From Klebsormidium nitens (lineage: Eukaryota > Plantae > Klebsormidiophyceae), in assembly GCA_000708835.1 (NCBI GenBank), contig DF237404.1, positions 11,759 through 75,758 on the forward strand: 64,000 bases of DNA, in the 5' to 3' direction. Numbering within the stretch: the stretch's first letter is position 1; each line of letters starts with the position of its first letter. The position numbers and the translations under genes were made by a program. Positions 6,817 through 49,588 of this stretch are shown in pieces. A model generated the notes under the pieces. That model was given only the letters and a program-made list of their open reading frames with translations. It was not told the DNA's origin and ran no database searches.

Positions 6817-9800
6817 ATGGCTGCTCTAGCAGCCAGCAGGGTAATCCAGCAGACCTGCACGCCGTTTCTCACATCTCGAAGCAGAAATCCACGGAAGCAA
6901 TGGGTGCATGCTTCGCCGGCGTGCGGCACATGCTCTTGGCAATCACCAAAGCTTTTGACTCTCCAAAGCTCGAACATATTTCAGACTAACGATCTCCCTG
7001 TTGCATCCAGTCATCGTAAACTGTCTTCAAAGAGCAGGGATAAGCAGAGGTTGAGTGCCCTCGCTACAGAAACTGAGTTCGGAGGCAACGACGGTGGTGG
7101 AAAAAAGGGTACTGGGGTCGGCGATGGGGGGGGTGGCGGTGGGGGAGGGTCTGGAGGAGACCAAGGCGGGGGGCCAGGTGATTTTGGACCAGGATTTGGG
7201 GGAACAGGTGATGGCGGGAAAGGCCCGGAGCCACCATTGAGCCTCTGGCAACAGTAAGTGGGCATTGGGCTTGTGACGCGCCGCCGTACTTGCATTTGAA
7301 AGTTAGGGTTTCCATCGCTTGATGTTTCGTAGCCAAATGCCATGAGCTTGATCTCCTTCTTACGCGCATGCAAGTTGTTGCAACAGCGGCAGCATTCGCG
7401 AGTGGTTTTCATCTTTGGTAGCGGAATTGGACTGTGTTCATTGAATTGCATCGGAACGGCAAATGCACGAAGGATTCTAGGTTCTCCAGCAATTGCTCAA
7501 ACGCGATGCAAAGGTGCTATCTCAAGTTCTTCTTGATTCAGCCAAAATCTTTTGAGTCCTGCAGCCTGGGAGTTTTCTGCCCCTTTCTGATGCCATTGAT
7601 TTTACATCCAGAGATCTTGAGAAGCATTGAGCTGGATTGTGACAACCGCTCGAAGGGGCACTTGCTTTATAACGTGGATCGTAGAAGCAATCAGCAACTC
7701 TAGTAGCAACTCCTTCCATTCTGGGCTTCCTGTGGCAGGTCTTATTTGTGTGACTCTCGTTGTCTCTCTTTTAGGTACCTCGCTCTCTTAGAAAGCCACC
7801 CGGTGCTCACCAAGGCAATCACTTCTTCTTTTCTCAACTTTGCCGGAGACTTGCTGTGCCAGGTAAGATACTCCGAAGCACTCTCTGGAGATGAAGGAAC
7901 GCTTTTCACAAAATCGTCAGCAGCTTTGCTTGCTCTATAGTAGAAGCCATATCGCTTTAGGTTGGTAAAGGACACCTGTCCACGAACACAGCTTTCCTAT
8001 CTTGATTGCCACATCATACTCAGTTCTTAAGTGTTGCCAAGATCCGCTGAATGATCGATCAAATGTGTATACGAGCTGAACTCAACTTCCTGCACTTCAA
8101 AGTCGTCTCAATCTGAAGCTGAGCTGGTTGGCAGGTCCGCTTAGAACTTACAAGGTATTCATTTTTCGCTCTCGTCCAGACTGTGATTGAGAAGAAGAAG
8201 GAACTGGACTTCAGACGAATGGGCGTCATCTCTCTCATTGGCCTCGTTTTGGTGGGGCCTACCCTGCATTTCTGGTGAGCAAGCTGAGCGCTTTTCCAGA
8301 AGCTGTTGCTCCCCAAAGCTACGAGCAGTGGAATCATAAAGGCTTTATTGAACATTGCAGCTTCAGCGCTTCCAAACAAGCCACTGGGTGTTGATCCGGT
8401 TATGAGATTGGAGATGGCATCAACGATCAGTGTGCTGGCCGGTCGCTTCTGGCCACTTGGCAGAAGTAAACCGGCTACTGAGTGTTCAAGATCCGTCCAG
8501 CCGACCTGGCTTCAACCTATCGAACTCGGTCAGGACAAACGGTCAGGTTCAAAGCAAGCCTCAAGTACTACAAAGCGTTCGCATTTCCAGCGTGCACCCT
8601 TTCTGATTTGCCTTGTAAATTGGGCGTCGGGGACTGGTTCCCCCCAGGGGACCACGTAGTGCCCCATGGTGCTGACTTGGTCGCCAAGCCAATTTTCAAG
8701 ACAGGGAGTGTGTGGGCCTTCGGATGAGTTTCTCCCCTCATGACTTGGATGCTCTGTTCCTTGGAATCTGGCACCCTTTTTAAGGGCCAAGTATGCACCA
8801 TGAAAACCAAATCTGGGGAGAGGGAGTGCGAAGCGTTGCGGAAGGAAGACAAGATGGACCTTGAGTTGTTTTCCAGGTACGGCCTCCTCAATCGGACGGT
8901 GAAAATTCCTGGGGGAGCAGGCATCGTTTCTCGGCTGGTCCTTGATCAAGTGAGTACTGGCAGGCAAGGCCAACTGAAAACTGCTGCAGCCGAGTTTGAC
9001 CGTGAGGAGAAGCGGCTGATCTGTCGACTCTGCTTGGGTCGGGCGTCAGTCAACCTCCTCCTGCTCAAGCAGAGGAGGTCGGGCGGAAGACTCTGCTTGA
9101 GCTTCCCTTACTTTGTTCAGTATATCGTTTGGCAATTGTCTGCCGACGCTTTGATGGTCCATTTCACCTCACCTGTTCGATAGTAACGTCGGGCGCCTTT
9201 TCTCCATGATATGTCGCTCTCGAATCTGATGCGTTCCTACCATCGGTCTTCACCGTCCAGGCAGGTATATTAGACGCTGGCGACCGAATTCATCGTGGTC
9301 ACAGCGAACTCTTCGAGACATTCACATTTCGCTTTCTTCGTCCGACTCTGCTGTGAAGAATTGAAGAAAGACCGTTGCTTCGCGTTCTGGTCACCAAAAC
9401 AAATCTTGGAATCAATACAACCCCGCCTTCGTTCATAGTCGGGGGGCGTCGTCCACTTTTTGCCACTGCAGCGTCCACGCTAACCAATCAAGCACCTCAG
9501 AAAGTAAACCTTCCAAGAGCGTCAACTGACGGCTTATTCATCTCGTTCCCAGTTCCTCTTCTCGCCCGCCTTCATCGCCGCTTTCTTCAGCACGCTGCTC
9601 ACCCTCGAAGGGCGGCCGAGCCTCATCCAAGCTACGTTGCAAAAGGAGTGGGTATCCACGTGCATAGCCAACTGGAAGATCTGGATCCCCTTCCAGTTCC
9701 TCAACTTCTGGCTCGTGCCTCCGCAATTGCAGGTATGTGCTCCCTGATCCGTGCAGTCTTTGGCTGTCCAGATCGAATCTCTCAATATCCGTATGCTGTT

Positions 9801-41600: not shown

Positions 41601-43718
41601 GAACCTGAGTGAGGGGAGCGGCCAAGAAGCATCCAGGACTTCAGGGAAACCTATGCAAGCATTTAAAGCCACACTTGTTAAACCCAGTCGTTATCACACT
41701 AACACGTTAGAAATCAAGCAAGACAGCAAATCAAGAACAAAACAGAGGTGACAAGCATTTAAATTGCTCCCATGTCTAAGAGGAGCTAGCAGCTTGCAGC
41801 CGGCTTAGGTGCAAACTGGGGTACCTAATCGAGAAGCAATGCCCTGAACAAAAGAAGCTTAGAAATCATTCAAGTTGCAGGCTTACCTGACAAAGGTTTC
41901 ACTAGTACAGGCATCCATCTGTTGGGTGCAGTCAGTGCCAAAGAAAGATCCGGAAACCATGGTAAGGACAGTCCTCTAAGTTCACGCCATTTTAAGAGCT
42001 CCGACAACCCGCTATGGCAACTCATACATTGATTATGGCAGTAGAGAAATGCGACACCTGGAACAAGCGATGGCCCTCAATGGGTGAGAGCACCATTGCT
42101 TATAAACCCGCCTCGCACACCCGCTGTTCTTGGATTTATTAGCACCAGGCGGAAATTCAGGGGCATGAACCAGCTGGTCCAGCTCGTGGGTCGTCTTTGA
42201 AGTTTGATCTTCTTCCAAGCTTCATGCAGGCGCCATGATTCCGAACTTGCGCGCTAGCTGGACCGTTGAACCACTTCTTACATTTACCGTGGTACGGTAG
42301 GCTTTTACTTTTGTTGTACAGGTCGGGCCAGGACTTTCGTTCCGAAAGAACGACAGTTACTGTCGTTGACGCTGAAAAGTTCCTTGACGACTGCAGAAAG
42401 GGCCAGGTCCAGTCAGACATTGCTTGCGGTGTCAGTGTCGAGGGCAGACTTCTCAATCGTCGTCGAACTCACGAAACCGTCCACTGCAACTTCCCGGTGA
42501 CTTTCTGAAATATCTAACGCGATCGGATCCTGTCACCCGGTGCCTACACTGCCAGAGAAAGCGTTACGTACTCCGGTTCTGACAATGACATCTTAGATAT
42601 TGTCAATCATGATCATCATAGCGTACCGGCACTTTTGTTGGCGGGCCTTGGGAGTGCTAATAGTGGGCGTTGGCGAGGTGTATGGTCGCTTGAAATTGGA
42701 GGAAAATGCAAGAAATATCTAATCTGAATTCGAACTGTGTTTGTCATCGAAAACGCAGCAACACTGGATGGTAGCCTTTAAGACCCCAGTACGTACCTCA
42801 GTGGCATTTATGGAACCATCATAACAACCCGCCTGACAAAAAGTTTTCAAAAGAGGAGGGAAGTTGACGTGGCGGCTCGGGAAGTACACTTGAGGAACAC
42901 TTCGAATGCCACGAATATCTACGAGTCCCACGCGTGAAGCCTCCACCAATAAGAACACCTCAAAGTTCCAGGTGGGACGCCGAAGTTTGCGGGACGGTTG
43001 GTGTCAGATTCAAGTCTCCTTCCATTCCTCCGCAAGGTCCCACGTGACGGTCAAAGGCACGGCGCAACGGTAAGATGGCCGCAAGGAGCAGATTCGTTGA
43101 GCTTGCATGATGGAATGATGGAAGAGTACGTGTGCTAGCTCGCAAGAATAATCATTCCACAACGCTTCAATGCAGACTCAGAAAGCTTGTTTTAGAGGTT
43201 GCCAACGGCGGTGTGCGTCAGGAGAGAAAATCACAAAACTTGCGATAGATGACCCGTAGCATTAGTAGCACTATGTGCAAGTTGCTTTTAAAAGGCAGTC
43301 ATGCATCGCCTCAAACCCTTCAATCTTTCAACGGTGGTCTGCACATCAATATATGTAAAGTAGAAATTCTGCTTGAAGACCTCGCTGCAATGCTGTGGCG
43401 AGTTGCACGGAGTTGCTGCATCCGATATCGAAGTGGCCAAGCTACCTAGTTACGTCTAATTAATTGCAGCAACATCAAGTCAAGTCATGGCTTTCTCCTT
43501 CTAGGGCCTCAAACAGGCATTGGAGAACATCCTGTGGAATCACTCGAGTTACAAGTCCTACAATGGTACACGCTCTACTATGCGACTCCAATGAAAAGTA
43601 GAAGAGCATGCCCAAAGTGAATTGCACTCACTCGAATATGCTGAAACTCCCCATCAGTCCAACGATTTTGTCGATCAGTCCAAACTTTGCTTGCTCCCAA
43701 CAGAGCCGATTTGCTACT

Positions 43719-46700
43719 TCAGCACACTTTGCAGCTTTTTCGGCAGCTTCCAGCATATTGTGGAGAACCCACCATGTAGTCCGGGTTCTTCTCACATTCC
43801 CCTTGAGCTGCCCATTGATCGCAATGCTCGTTGACGTCTTCACATCCATTTGGATCCACCTGTCATGGTTGTGTAGATGTCAGCCATCAATTCCACGCAG
43901 AAGTCGCTATTTAAGCCAACAAATCAAATGGGCTAAGTCCACGCGCTCGACAAAATACATAGGTGCTCAGGAGTCCAGCGCCACTGTGTCCTATGGTGCG
44001 AAAACCCCATACACCAACCGCAACATTCAGGGAAAACGTTTTCAGGATTTGCTTTGAACTTCGGACACAATTTGCCAGAATCAATTTAAAACAAGGGCCC
44101 ATCTGACAACAAAGTAAATCAGAAGTAAAAAGCGGAATACCAAAAAGTGCTCCAGGCCTCTGAACACAAAAGACACACAATCAGGGCCGGACGCAAATAT
44201 GTTACAGCAGCAATGTCCACAAGCTCGTGCAAAGGAGTCATAGCCGTCCCAAGATAGCTGTGAACTCGTCTGCTGCAGACAAGCGCAGTCGACGAACTTA
44301 GTGATGGTTGAAGGTGGGCAGCAATTGCACTCTGACCCGGTTGATCCAAGCGCCCCGTCCCTAGGTTGCGCCTTTTCGTCGATCCAAACAGTCGCTTGAG
44401 CAAGCTTCGCCAGTGCAGAAACCGTGTCAGACAGACCGCAGTTGAAGTGGCGAGAGCAGCATACCTTCGGCCTATCGAAGGACGCCACGTGCATCCATTT
44501 GGTGGCGCTCCACTTCTCGCCCTGCTCGACTGGGCAGCCCCCGTGCAGGCTGTTGTCGTCGGTGGAGGCGTCGGGGTGCAGGCTGAAGAACAGGAGCGCG
44601 TCTCCTTTCTTCGGCTTGACTGTAAGAAAGCAACCGAACGGTAAGCTTGCGTCACAGGTCAGATGATAGACTGGAGTGGATGAGGTGCCCCTTTTTCTGG
44701 TGGCACCAAACAGGTTCCGCTCTGGGTCCCCCTTTGTTAAAAATCGGTTAGTCCTTTCTCAGGTTCTTGATGCCAAGCCTGAACGTTTTGTGAACCAAAG
44801 TTTCACTCGTGAGATCGTTCGAGTGCTGATCGCGACTGCAGCCTCAATTTTGCTTTGGTCGAGAAAGCTATCAGGAAGCTCTTCTCTTTTACACGGCCCA
44901 CCACTTTGACCAAGTGCAATGCTGTGGCGCACCCTCAAAAGCGGTCATCCTCACGGATCGCAGCTGCCCTGGTGTTTCTTATTGCGGTCCAGAAGGGGAA
45001 AATGAAAGCGAGTAAGTCGACTGACGGCTCGCACAGCGACCGTTGTCTTCGAGTCCGCCGACAATTTGAAGAGTAGTCGGACTAGAAGAAAGGATTTTAC
45101 GGAACTGCGTCTGCTAAAACGAAGAAAAGGGGACCAGTTGCAGATTACACAGACGAAGGGAATGTGCGCCACTCCAACAGGAAATGGAGGAGAGTCTCGT
45201 CCTTGCATAGTACAACGGCGGGTCGTAGTGACCCTCTTTCCAGAACCGGTAGTCACTCAACCCGTCTACCCAAGTCGATTGAGCTGCTCCAAAAAGCCGA
45301 TGATGTTTCGTCACGTCTCCGGGCTGCTTAATGTGGGCGTCTAACCACGTGGTTCCGCACCAATACCTGCGCAAAGCGTCTTGCTCTGGCCTCACTGAGT
45401 AATTCGTCTCTGGTTACTCCATTGAGAGACTCGAAATATTGGCATACGGACCAATTGACCACCGCATGGTTACGGGCGCCACGCTGACCTCTTTGATACA
45501 GTATGATCCGCTTACCTGCAACCCCCTTTTTGGCGCACTCGGACCAGGTGTCGTCCTTCAAGCGGGTGTCGGGCTCGGACTTGGGGAAGACCGTCTCCCC
45601 GCCCTTGCCTACGTGGCTCAGGTACATGAGAACGGTGGCAATGCGGTGGCCCCCCAGCTGGATGTTGTACTTGTCGTGGAAGAAGTCGAAGTGCGGGTCT
45701 GCGAAATAAGAGACCCGGCATCGTGTTAAGTGTTGGTAAAGGTCTGGAAAGCTGGGCAAAAGAAGAGGGAGCGAAGACGCTCTAGACGATTAGGGACGAT
45801 GTTGATACTTGTCGTGGAAGAAGACAAAACGAGGATTTGCGAATAAAAGACCCGGAGCGAAACGAAGCCATTGTTTTCATCAAAGGGGTCGCAAAACAAG
45901 GCGAAAGAAGAGGAGTGAAGAAGCTCTGGTCGAAACAGACTAACGTGTACTCAACGAGAAAAATGTCAGAGTGGGGATTTGCGGAAAGGAAAGTTTCTGT
46001 GAAAATGAAGGCGATTGGCTTTGGCGTCATTCAAGCGGTTGGAACGCGGGGCGAGGAAGCACTAGACGTATACGGACTGTTGTTGGACTTGTCGATGTGG
46101 GATTCTGCGAAAATCTCATTGTGGATGGAGGCAATTGGTGTCGGCAATCTCTCAAGGTCTTAAAAAGCGGGGCGAAAGAAGAGATAGCGAACAAGCATGA
46201 GCGAATTCGCGAAGTCTGCACGGAATGTTGTTGGCTCTCGTCAAAGATAAATGGTCCGCTCGGTCGCTCTATCCGCCATCATGTCAAATAAGAGACTCAG
46301 GCAGAGACACGGGGAAGGCACGTAGGAGCGAAGTCGTTGTCGATTCAGTCCGCGAAGATAAATGTCCTCACAGCGGGGACGTGAGCTTCAAAAAGGGACA
46401 CGTAACATGGATATGCACACATGAGCTTGAGGCGCTGAAGGGCGGGCATTTGAAAGCGGAAGTTCCTATACTGGGAAGCAGGTCGTTTGGACGATGAGAG
46501 ACGAAGCAGAGGAAACGGCTCTAGTCGACTAAACAACGAGTTTTCCAGAATCCTATTGAGGCGCCATTCTATTTCCAGTTCGTCTGCTGATGGATCCGAG
46601 TTCGATCCGAAGACGACACCTAGAGAATAGTGCTGACTGACGGCCGTCCCGGATCAAGACCACAGCTATGCATCTGACCAGCTTATTACGGACACGATGT

Positions 46701-49588
46701 GGGTACAAGCGTTGAGCGTACTGACCGTATTTCTGGCCGTGCTCGTAGCGCAGCACCTGGATTGACTCGCCGTTTTCTGTAACAAAAGCAGAGTCAGAGT
46801 CAGAACTCAGATAGCAGCTCGTGAATGACGCGTTAGATCGGAGACTAAACAGGCCTCAGATATCAAACATTTTATCCAGCTTCAACGTTCAGTCGGAATT
46901 AAAGTGCCGTTTTAACCCTGTGTACACACACAGCTTACTGCCTAGGCGGTGCAGGCAATCAAGGAGGTCAAAACGTCGGTTTTTCAGCTCTCCTGCTCAA
47001 TTGAACGAACAGAACTTAGATTTTACTCCAAGGGGGATCCTGATTGTGGAATCAGGACTGAGATTGAGAAAATTCATTGCTAGAATGATTGGCGTTACTG
47101 CTGGATAATGTTTTCAACTTACCAACAGGAATGAAGGTCCATGCAGCGATCTTGGCTTCTATTCGTGCAACAATCTCGTCCTGCAAAGGTAAAGATTGGA
47201 TGCATCCCTTGAGTCTACTGAGTCAAGGAAATCAATGTACCGAACTCGCAGGTAAAGAAGAGCTAAACGTGTGTCTGCTTTGATATGCTCTCGTCCTCCT
47301 TCTGGTAAAGTTTCTGAGATCGCACCCTGTCCTGAAAGTCCATCTGTTGCCCGTGAGTGATGCTTGATAAGTAATTGTTTCATCATTATTTTTTCATCTC
47401 TCTCTCTCTAACAAGCATCGTTTATGACTCAATCAAGCTGAAAGCTATCTTGAGGCCAAGCCATCAGCGCCCAGTCCCTCAATGCCCATTTCGAAAGCGC
47501 GGCACAATCATGAAGAAGACAAATACAAGCACTGGCCAGACCTTGGCGCAGCGGCCCTGACGATTGCTACTTATCATGCCCTCAACTCGTGTGACGACTG
47601 TCGCTATGAAACTTTACAAGATGGTAGATTTGAATTCTGCAGGTACTAGCAACCTAATGTCTCCAATTGAGTGGCGGCTTTAGCAGTAGCACGTTCTGAA
47701 GATGGTGACTTCGACTTCCTTTGTGCATGACGGATAATCAGTTCGTAGGCTCAAACCAAGTCTGCTCAGTTGCGACCAATCCCTCTGCAACACCCCTTGT
47801 TGCACTACCCCAACCCGCCCCCCCTCACCTGGCCCTTTTGCAGGAACATGCCAGAGCTGGTGCGCACTTCGCTCGGGACGCTCTCCCCCGAGGTGCTATC
47901 AGCCACGGTCGACTTCTGGAGCTTGTCGCGGGCCTGTAAGCGGTCAGACTAGACAGTTTGCTTCTGGAGGGGTGAGAATTGGGTGCCGCACCTGAGCTTT
48001 ACGCAGGAACATGCCGGAGCTGGTGCGCCCCTCATTCACAATGCCACCCCCCGTCTTGTCATCTACCACCACGCTCTGCTCGAGATTGCCCCGCGCCTGT
48101 ACAAAGTGCACCCAATGACAGGCGTTGAAAACTATACTAAATGACAAGGTTCTCAACTGAGACCTGCCCAGAGGTGCACTATCCTAAATTCGAAAGTGTT
48201 GCCCCCAGACGTGTGCACAAAGGGCAGTCACACAAGCAGGGCATGAAAGGAGCTACAAGTCAGATATGCCCTTTCCATGCAAGACGCACATCCAGTCCAC
48301 GCAATGCACCAAAGAGCCTTCTTTGAAATTCTGTGGATGCTGACGGGGACATGAAGCAAGCTCTCCAACAAGATAGAGTCTACTCGAAGCGGACTCTGGT
48401 ATGATTGACAAGAATATCTGCCAGCGCCCTGCAAGTGCAAGCAACATATCTCCTGAATCTTGTTGGGCCACAAGAGCATGAACATGTGATGTCCTTGGCT
48501 GGTGTATCTTGCCCTTAATGACAGCAGAAAGTTGCAGTTACTTACCAGCTCCACTAGATGGTCGCACTCCTCGTCAGTCAGGAAGCCATGGTACACCCAA
48601 GCCCTGAAGGCAAAAAGAGGAAGGGGTCTGAGGAAGTTTTCGCCCTCGCTTCACACCAACATTGTCATGAGCACACAAATCCTTTTATCGACTTCTCAAA
48701 AGATCCAGATGGACTAGGAGGTACAAGGTCCCCTGTTAGTAACCAGCAGGGTAGGCAGCCTGGTCAAGTGAAATTCACCTCTGCTGTGCAGATGTTTGCT
48801 TCACACCACTTGACAGGCCCTTGACGGATCGATAACAACGATACAGCTTGTTCCTGTGAATGAGTGCTGGTTGAGTCTAAGGAAGTGCAAAGTTGAAAGG
48901 AGTCCCACTTACCTGGGTTTCCAGGACAAGTGCTCCACTTTTGTTGGATCGACGTGCCAGCTGGATTTGGAGACCACCTGCTGAATTGTGTCTGCCTGCA
49001 GCTGTTTGCTGGTCTGATGACTGCAAGAAGGGGCAATGAGGTCTTCAGGCCTTGATCGAGTAAAGTCATGACTGGAGCAGTAGCAGGCAGGTTGGGCATT
49101 CCCCTTATTGAATTGACGGCAATAGACACGAAGGAGTATCAGTCTGGCTGTCAAAGCTTTTCAGTTCAGACTCTAGAAGCAGGTCAGACCGAGGCTTCAT
49201 TGAAAGTGTCGGAGAGCAGTCAGAGGCTCGTGAAAACTGCGGACATCTGGTCGAAGTATGCAAGCATCTGGATATGATGGAGGTTCCCACATTTTGGAAG
49301 AACCATCATCAGATTGAGGCAGCTGTGAGCAATCAGATTGCACTCTTAGCTCCTTCAGCTGCTGAGAAGCCTTCTCTACAATGGTTGAGCTACATGCTTG
49401 CAAACTCACATGAACACATTACACAACCCTAATCCTTGTATCGTCCTTCGGAGCATGAGAGTGCACAGATTGTATGCCCACCTTTCGCCCAGCCACCCAG
49501 GCAGATCATCTGCTTGGCCAAGCCCCCTCACGGGTCCAATCGCTGAAAGACCGATCAGAAATCCAGTAAGAAGCAGCACGTGCCCCAT
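43719..49588 (-). CDS. P4H: Plant-type prolyl 4-hydroxylase (2OG-Fe(II) dioxygenase) with N-terminal anchor and C-terminal ShKT-like Cys domain
   Basis: Peptides: MGHVLLLTGFLIGL; VEHLSWKPR|AWVYHGFLTDEECDHL; RTSSGMFL (two alternative exons); DEIVARIEAKIAAWTFIPV; ENGESIQVLRYEHGQKY|DPHFDFF (HxD); IATVLMYLSHVGKGGETVFP; LHGGCPVEQGEKWSATKWMH; CEDVNEHCDQWAAQGECEKNPDYM...CRKSCKVC*. Confidence 0.95.
47829..47933 (-). CDS. P4H: P4H candidate mutually exclusive exon B (105 nt)
   Basis: ttacag|ARDKLQKSTVADSTSGESVPSEVRTSSGMFLQKGQ|gtgagg, phase 0/0. Confidence 0.88.
47992..48096 (-). CDS. P4H: P4H candidate mutually exclusive exon A (105 nt)
   Basis: acag|ARGNLEQSVVVDDKTGGGIVNEGRTSSGMFLRKAQ|gtgcgg, phase 0/0. 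Confidence 0.85.

Follow-up and report, generated by a model that had tools for sequence, protein, structure and literature searches.

A prolyl 4-hydroxylase (P4H) gene of the streptophyte alga Klebsormidium nitens very probably carries a genuine pair of mutually exclusive exons that arose by tandem duplication, which is the best explanation of the data as a whole. The gene lies on the minus strand of a 64,000-nucleotide (nt) stretch of contig DF237404.1 (positions 11,759 to 75,758 of the forward strand; GenBank assembly GCA_000708835.1), hereafter the window, to which positions refer unless another contig is named. The two exons, designated 4A and 4B (A and B for short), encode alternative versions of a substrate-binding hairpin loop, are separated by a single short spacer and are both retained in a related Klebsormidium. 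The elements concerned are as follows.

47992..48096, minus strand: exon 4A, the divergent version of the hairpin (ARGNLEQSVVVDDKTGGGIVNEGRTSSGMFLRKAQ); 105 nt, with the weak donor GTGCGG.
47934..47991, minus strand: spacer intron between A and B; 58 nt.
47965..47991, minus strand: opening segment of the spacer (GTGCGGCACCCAATTCTCACCCCTCC..), 27 nt long, unchanged in the related species and containing CTCAC, the A of which is 19 nt from the donor.
47943..47947, minus strand: branch-like motif CTGAC at spacer positions 45-49, its A being 48 nt from donor A and 10 nt from acceptor B.
47829..47933, minus strand: exon 4B, the canonical version of the hairpin (ARDKLQKSTVADSTSGESVPSEVRTSSGMFLQKGQ); 105 nt.

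The first-pass annotation of this DNA had described two homologous 105-nt exons in phase 0/0 with intact AG/GT and no stops, a description that was borne out in full, the encoded peptides being exactly as quoted. Each exon is open in frame 0 only, is preceded by ACAG and is followed by GT. Aligned without gaps, A and B are identical at 69 of 105 nt (66%) and at 18 of 35 amino acids (51%), with a start-to-start period of 163 nt; no third copy was found in the gene region using tblastn. This likeness is not due to chance, since both exons are homologous to the same P4H segment and both are spliced into mRNA. The 58-nt separation, with CTGAC roughly 45 nt from the donor, was also correctly given, and the spacer is indeed much shorter than the other eight introns of the gene, each of which measures 309-1027 nt. 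Flanking exon edges had been guessed near 48545 and 47185; exon 3 ends at 48546 and exon 5 starts at 47180.

Twenty sequencing runs from seven studies contained the gene stretch or part of it, and one more was added by its species label. Contigs of four runs from four studies (X1, X11, X12 and X20) were aligned to positions 43700-49400. Every constitutive intron was removed at GT..AG (CT..AC on the plus strand) in these contigs, and the material is therefore complementary DNA, although the runs had only been guessed to be RNA. The two constitutive exons that flank the pair are as follows.

48546..48603, minus strand: constitutive exon 3 (..AWVYHGFLTDEECDHLVEL), the donor of which joins A or B (junctions 48545->48096 and 48545->47933).
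47123..47180, minus strand: constitutive exon 5 (DEIVARIEAKIAAWTFIPV), the acceptor of which takes A or B (junctions 47992->47180 and 47829->47180).

Junctions between exon 3 and A (48545->48096), A and exon 5 (47992->47180) and B and exon 5 (47829->47180) were present in all four runs, and that between exon 3 and B (48545->47933) in three of the four. All junctions fell at GT..AG sites and the contigs matched the window without differences. Neither an A-B junction, which would require removal of the 58-nt intron, nor a junction of exon 3 with exon 5, skipping both, was present in the contigs of the four runs. The A and B forms were assembled as separate 160-nt contigs, each comprising the 105 nt of the exon with approximately 27-29 nt of exons 3 and 5, which is the signature of a two-path bubble in an assembly graph. 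Depths of the A and B contigs were 196/250, 63/48, 34/22 and 14.7/12.3 in the four runs. Their sums (446, 111, 56 and 27) approximate the depths of the constitutive contigs (500-557, 98.8, 57.6 and 29.4), and the share of A was 0.44-0.61 across studies. The level of use is therefore similar for A and B, and virtually every mRNA possesses one or the other. The mutual exclusivity originally proposed from the letters alone is thus matched by the junctions present, by the two that are missing and by depths that add up. In run X1 only, two contigs leave the gene at 44574 and 46184 and enter sequence absent from the aligned stretch; these loose ends may represent minor alternative junctions or chimeric contigs.

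A protein search returned, at 100% identity, the NCBI entry 'Oxoglutarate/iron-dependent oxygenase [Klebsormidium nitens]' (P0002), a deposited model of 356 amino acids that includes exon A followed by exon B. This is exactly the form expected if both exons were normally included together, yielding an enzyme with a tandemly repeated hairpin segment; moreover, the 58-nt intron has GT..AG ends and A followed by B reads through in frame. Such double inclusion is nevertheless highly improbable. The 58-nt intron is removed in no contig of the four runs, all four either/or junctions are present and the combined depth of A and B is not above that of the constitutive exons. In addition, P0002 aligns to the P4H of Chlamydomonas reinhardtii (Cr-P4H) in two overlapping pieces, which amounts to 35 additional amino acids inserted into the solved fold. 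At the twin exons the public gene model is probably incorrect, as the contigs support only two forms of 321 amino acids. P4Hs of K. nitens have entered phylogenies by way of the deposited annotation (PMC11252719), and either/or splicing corrects a public protein model that has already been put to such use.

Conservation was assessed against the orthologous gene of a related Klebsormidium (Logan contig L001 from SRR23617307), with synonymous (dS) and non-synonymous (dN) divergence estimated by the method of Nei and Gojobori. Identity was 55-68% for introns, 86-98% for constitutive exons and 84% for the spacer, which measures 61 nt in the relative. Exon A was 98.1% identical, with two changes in 105 nt (one N-to-K, one silent), and exon B 96.2% identical, with four changes, all silent. 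The divergence estimates against L001 were as follows.

Constitutive exons: dS 0.346, dN 0.034.
Exon A: dS 0.04, dN 0.013.
Exon B: dS 0.19, dN 0.
Exons A and B combined: dS 0.107, dN 0.006.

The dS of the combined pair was below that of the constitutive exons (Fisher p = 0.009). Both exons are under strong purifying selection at the protein level and are also constrained at silent sites, a constraint typical of regulated alternative exons. The dN/dS comparison suggested in the first-pass annotation as a check on both exons thus shows each of them to be maintained. Within K. nitens, A and B differ from each other with a dS of 0.75 and a dN of 0.39, and the duplication is therefore much older than the split of the two Klebsormidium species. 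It is extremely improbable that one copy is a decaying pseudoexon used as splicing noise only. In favour of this explanation, exon A is divergent, has no PDB match when searched alone and possesses a weak donor, and no A-like hairpin was found in other proteins in a search of limited sensitivity. However, both exons are present at comparable depth in four studies, and, with introns approximately 60% identical, neutral sequence would show roughly 30-40 changes where A exhibits two and B four silent ones.

The gene as a whole was modelled from the RNA junctions and then translated.

43719..49588, minus strand: whole P4H gene.

The resulting mRNA model has nine exons, with the ATG at 49588 and the stop after 43722. 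Inclusion of either 4A or 4B produces an open protein of 321 amino acids, and the two isoforms are identical except at residues 92-126. The protein has a hydrophobic N-terminus, matches the 2-oxoglutarate (2OG)-Fe(II) oxygenase domain PF13640 at 71.9 bits (cut-off 27) and PF03171 at 45.8 bits, also above its cut-off, and bears a C-terminal ShK domain (PF01549) that again exceeds the cut-off. Structures 2JIG and 3GZE of C. reinhardtii P4H-1 (Cr-P4H-1) were matched over the catalytic domain at E = 8e-74. The HxD...H motif is conserved relative to Cr-P4H-1, as is the 2OG-binding Lys of KWSATKW; HFD, SLHGGCP and KWSATKW of the K. nitens protein align to the Cr-P4H motifs. By these matches the gene product is identified as a Cr-P4H-1-like prolyl 4-hydroxylase with a C-terminal ShK domain. 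Its best full-length relatives are 55-64% identical and exhibit the same domain order.

The segment that is swapped could be located on the solved structure. Exon B aligns without gaps to chain positions 42-76 of 3GZE (E = 2.4e-5). The Cr-P4H construct begins at Val29, and the hairpin loop has been defined as Ser77-Thr94 (PMC9676403); an offset of 28 places Ser and Thr at 77 and 94 as named there, and the exon therefore corresponds to Cr-P4H residues 70-104, with the hairpin at exon positions 8-25. Assignment of the segment to the peptide-binding loop of Cr-P4H-1, as made in the first-pass annotation, agrees with this placement. The hairpin and the betaII-betaIII loop are the two substrate-binding loops, which form a tunnel over a (Ser-Pro)5 peptide (PMC9676403). 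The swap falls in a structurally defined substrate-binding loop of an enzyme responsible for hydroxyproline in cell-wall glycoproteins.

On direct comparison of the peptides, A and B differ at 11 of 18 positions within the hairpin and at 6 of 17 outside it. Among 174 homologues, B matches the family on average at 25 of 35 positions and A at 19 of 35. Residues that hardly vary in the family are replaced in A at positions 11 (A to V), 15 (S to T), 18 (S to G), 21 (S to N) and 23 (V to G). Exon A retains the conserved base RTSSGMFL; its tip is unusual and glycine-rich. Searched alone, exon A matched no PDB chain at E <= 10, and a region-limited protein search of limited sensitivity for an A-type hairpin elsewhere returned only the K. 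nitens protein itself. From these differences we infer that the 4A and 4B isoforms differ in their grip on hydroxyproline-rich glycoprotein substrates. The alternative, that the isoforms have equivalent biochemistry and that dosage or regulation, not substrate choice, accounts for retention of the pair, is considered unlikely. It would accord with the hairpin-base residues R, T, S, S and G, which are the same in A and B, and with a title cited in PMC11252719, according to which plant P4H paralogues can overlap in specificity. Against equivalence, the A/B differences cluster in the peptide-covering loop, and exon A has scarcely changed between species although it deviates from residues that are invariant in the family, a pattern indicative of selection for a distinct sequence. 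What sets the substrate specificity of plant P4Hs has been described as 'scarcely known' (PMC11252719), and 4A and 4B provide a natural pair of loop-swapped enzymes with which to ask.

Accepted mechanisms of exclusivity include an intron that is too short, incompatibility of U2 and U12 splice sites, nonsense-mediated decay (NMD) and competing RNA structures; where a cluster has two exons, a short intron is one accepted cause of exclusivity, and exons with a length divisible by three lie beyond the reach of NMD (PMC6071210). NMD was excluded as the enforcer: the exon length of 105 nt is divisible by three, and an mRNA with both exons stays open for 356 amino acids. Incompatibility of U2 and U12 sites was rejected, the three donors being GTAAGT, GTGCGG and GTGAGG, none of which resembles RTATCCTT. 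A search for conserved complementary elements found none, only inverted repeats of 11-17 nt in poorly conserved regions, two species being too few for an analysis of covariation, and the region from A through the spacer to B folded no better than shuffled sequences (z = +0.7). One candidate branch-point adenine is 19 nt from donor A (CTCAC, within the stretch of the spacer that is identical in the relative) and another is 48 nt from it (CTGAC). The branch site of the spacer would then be no further than 48 nt from donor A, which would not leave room for splicing A to B, and the 58-nt spacer would in this way enforce exclusivity at the splicing step. By comparison, introns of the K. nitens paralogue are approximately 280 nt or longer (tblastn coordinates). 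Grau-Bove et al. (PMC6142364) noted an unusual association of exon skipping with short introns in Klebsormidium, with which many such exon pairs would be consistent.

Several points weigh against this account of the locus. Assembled contigs drop rare variants, so that trace forms with both exons or with neither may escape, and depth is one average per contig. The ratio of A to B varies only modestly between studies and does not demonstrate regulated switching. The deposited annotation spliced the 58-nt intron in silico, and the conservation test rests on one other species. As to the mechanism, CTGAC reads CCGAC in the related Klebsormidium, and steric exclusion by the short spacer is inferred to be the best-supported mechanism. 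The altered motif would also accord with another explanation, which is somewhat unlikely, namely that either/or splicing is real but is enforced otherwise, for example by exon-bound splicing factors or RNA structure, the spacer being short as an incidental result of how large the duplicated unit was. The unusual conservation of the silent sites of both exons and of the first 27 nt of the spacer suggests bound regulators and would favour enforcement of this kind. It is opposed by the lack of conserved complementary elements, by the folding score and by the three 5' splice sites, none of which is U12-like, and also by the shortness of the spacer in both species (58 and 61 nt) relative to the other introns.

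The distribution of the pair was examined in related loci. In the K. nitens paralogue (P0009, locus L002) the hairpin is encoded by a single 105-nt exon (L002 4303-4407) that has the same boundaries and is not duplicated, and the Marchantia paleacea orthologue likewise has a single 105-nt exon with the same boundaries (L004 2422-2526). A metagenome scan with the segment spanning A and B yielded one contig, which is land-plant-like (L003 3010-3114) and also carries a single copy; this contig ends 226 nt after the exon and is uninformative on the depth of origin of the pair. The 105-nt phase-0 hairpin exon itself appears to be ancient, since its boundaries are the same in Klebsormidium, Marchantia and the metagenome contig. 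The search of orthologues for tandem exons, suggested in the first-pass annotation, was answered in part: the pair is kept in the related Klebsormidium and the exon is single-copy in Marchantia.

The pair may have arisen by a short tandem duplication with a period of 163 nt, of the same kind that left copies of exon edges in the introns of this gene. Duplication of a unit of such a size would take in an entire 105-nt exon and its two splice sites, leaving a short spacer. The intron between exons 6 and 7 contains a 58-nt sequence (45855-45798, minus strand) that is a decayed copy of the exon 7 acceptor edge, 137 nt upstream of the real edge, and comprises a pyrimidine tract, TTCGCAG changed to TTCGCAA and approximately 40 nt of coding sequence; none of 500 shuffles scored as well. 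A further degenerate copy of exon 7, proposed at the start of this intron, was not supported. In the same intron of the related Klebsormidium (L001 about 9010-9335) there are three partial copies of the start of exon 7 (DPHFDFFHDKYN-like) at spacings of approximately 130-155 nt, which are of similar size to the 163-nt A-to-B period. No flank homology that would define the duplication unit was detectable, the spacer being unlike either neighbouring intron end; the flank homology that could prove the unit has decayed.

The 1027-nt intron between exons 6 and 7 (45699-46725, minus strand) is itself absent from the K. nitens paralogue (L002 5507-5842) and the Marchantia orthologue (L004 4483-4662), in both of which ENGE..QKYDPH.. 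is encoded by one exon. The alignments would fit either a gain in the lineage of this gene or a loss in the others. Among other proteins, Vanilla planifolia P0150 has two RTSSG motifs owing to an exact 43-amino-acid tandem repeat (ECDHLISLAK...SKGK twice) over the hairpin. The repeat probably reflects either an artefact of assembly or annotation or a duplication of very recent date, and the protein was rejected as a comparable case. P4H models of Oryza spp. (P0123-P0127) are approximately 500-610 amino acids long with two full catalytic domains and look like fused neighbouring genes.

To our knowledge, documentation of functional mutually exclusive exons is ample for animals and rare for the plant lineage. 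In the literature examined, no alternative hairpin exon was described for plant or algal P4Hs, C. reinhardtii P4H-1 included, and no mutually exclusive exons were described in Klebsormidium. Four studies supply RNA support for the K. nitens pair, which selection has conserved in a sister species. As a tentative proposal, which we regard as possible and not as probable, a streptophyte alga and animals would have independently evolved a twin-exon swap of the P4H hairpin that gives two substrate preferences, the K. nitens pair being one of a genome-wide class of short-spacer pairs in Klebsormidium that derive from tandem duplications of approximately 140-165 nt and are exclusive as the spacer is too short to splice.

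Among P4Hs, the closest structural counterpart is C. reinhardtii P4H-1 (2JIG, 2V4A and 3GZE), with which the K. nitens enzyme shares the catalytic domain and a gapless exon 4B segment and from which it differs by the added C-terminal ShK domain. Land-plant P4H6/P4H7-like enzymes with ShK (Tox1) have the same domain order, and the 105-nt phase-0 boundaries are found in Marchantia; they differ in possessing a single hairpin exon, no A-type hairpin having been found among them, either in the region-limited search of limited sensitivity or in the comparison with 174 homologues. As regards exclusivity, the K. nitens pair resembles those governed by steric hindrance, of which alpha-tropomyosin exons 2 and 3 are the classic example, in that two clustered exons are separated by a very short spacer, with a candidate branch site near the upstream donor.

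The nearest parallel is human P4HA1. Splice variants of C-P4H-I (P4HA1) affect the hairpin loop (PMC9676403) and its exons 9a and 9b are mutually exclusive (PMC11868403), so that the human parallel over the equivalent segment, drawn in the first-pass annotation, holds. The human exons 9/10 (9a/9b) and the K. nitens pair have in common the superfamily and fold, homologous tandem exons used either/or and the hairpin loop that is swapped. Whereas the K. nitens enzyme is a monomer-type, ShK-tailed plant P4H, human P4HA1 belongs to a collagen enzyme of alpha2beta2 type. At 71 bp, the exons of P4HA1 are shorter, and they stand in long introns where the K. nitens pair has a short spacer; the human choice is linked to CTCF and RNA polymerase II pausing under hypoxia and not to a short spacer. 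The convergence with animals that had been suggested is supported by the single-copy exon of the K. nitens paralogue and the Marchantia orthologue, which indicates that the pair arose independently of that in P4HA1, and convergence between the two is clear. Neither tandem-duplicated mutually exclusive exons nor the P4H hairpin swap is new as a kind; the K. nitens gene adds a well-supported member from the plant lineage.

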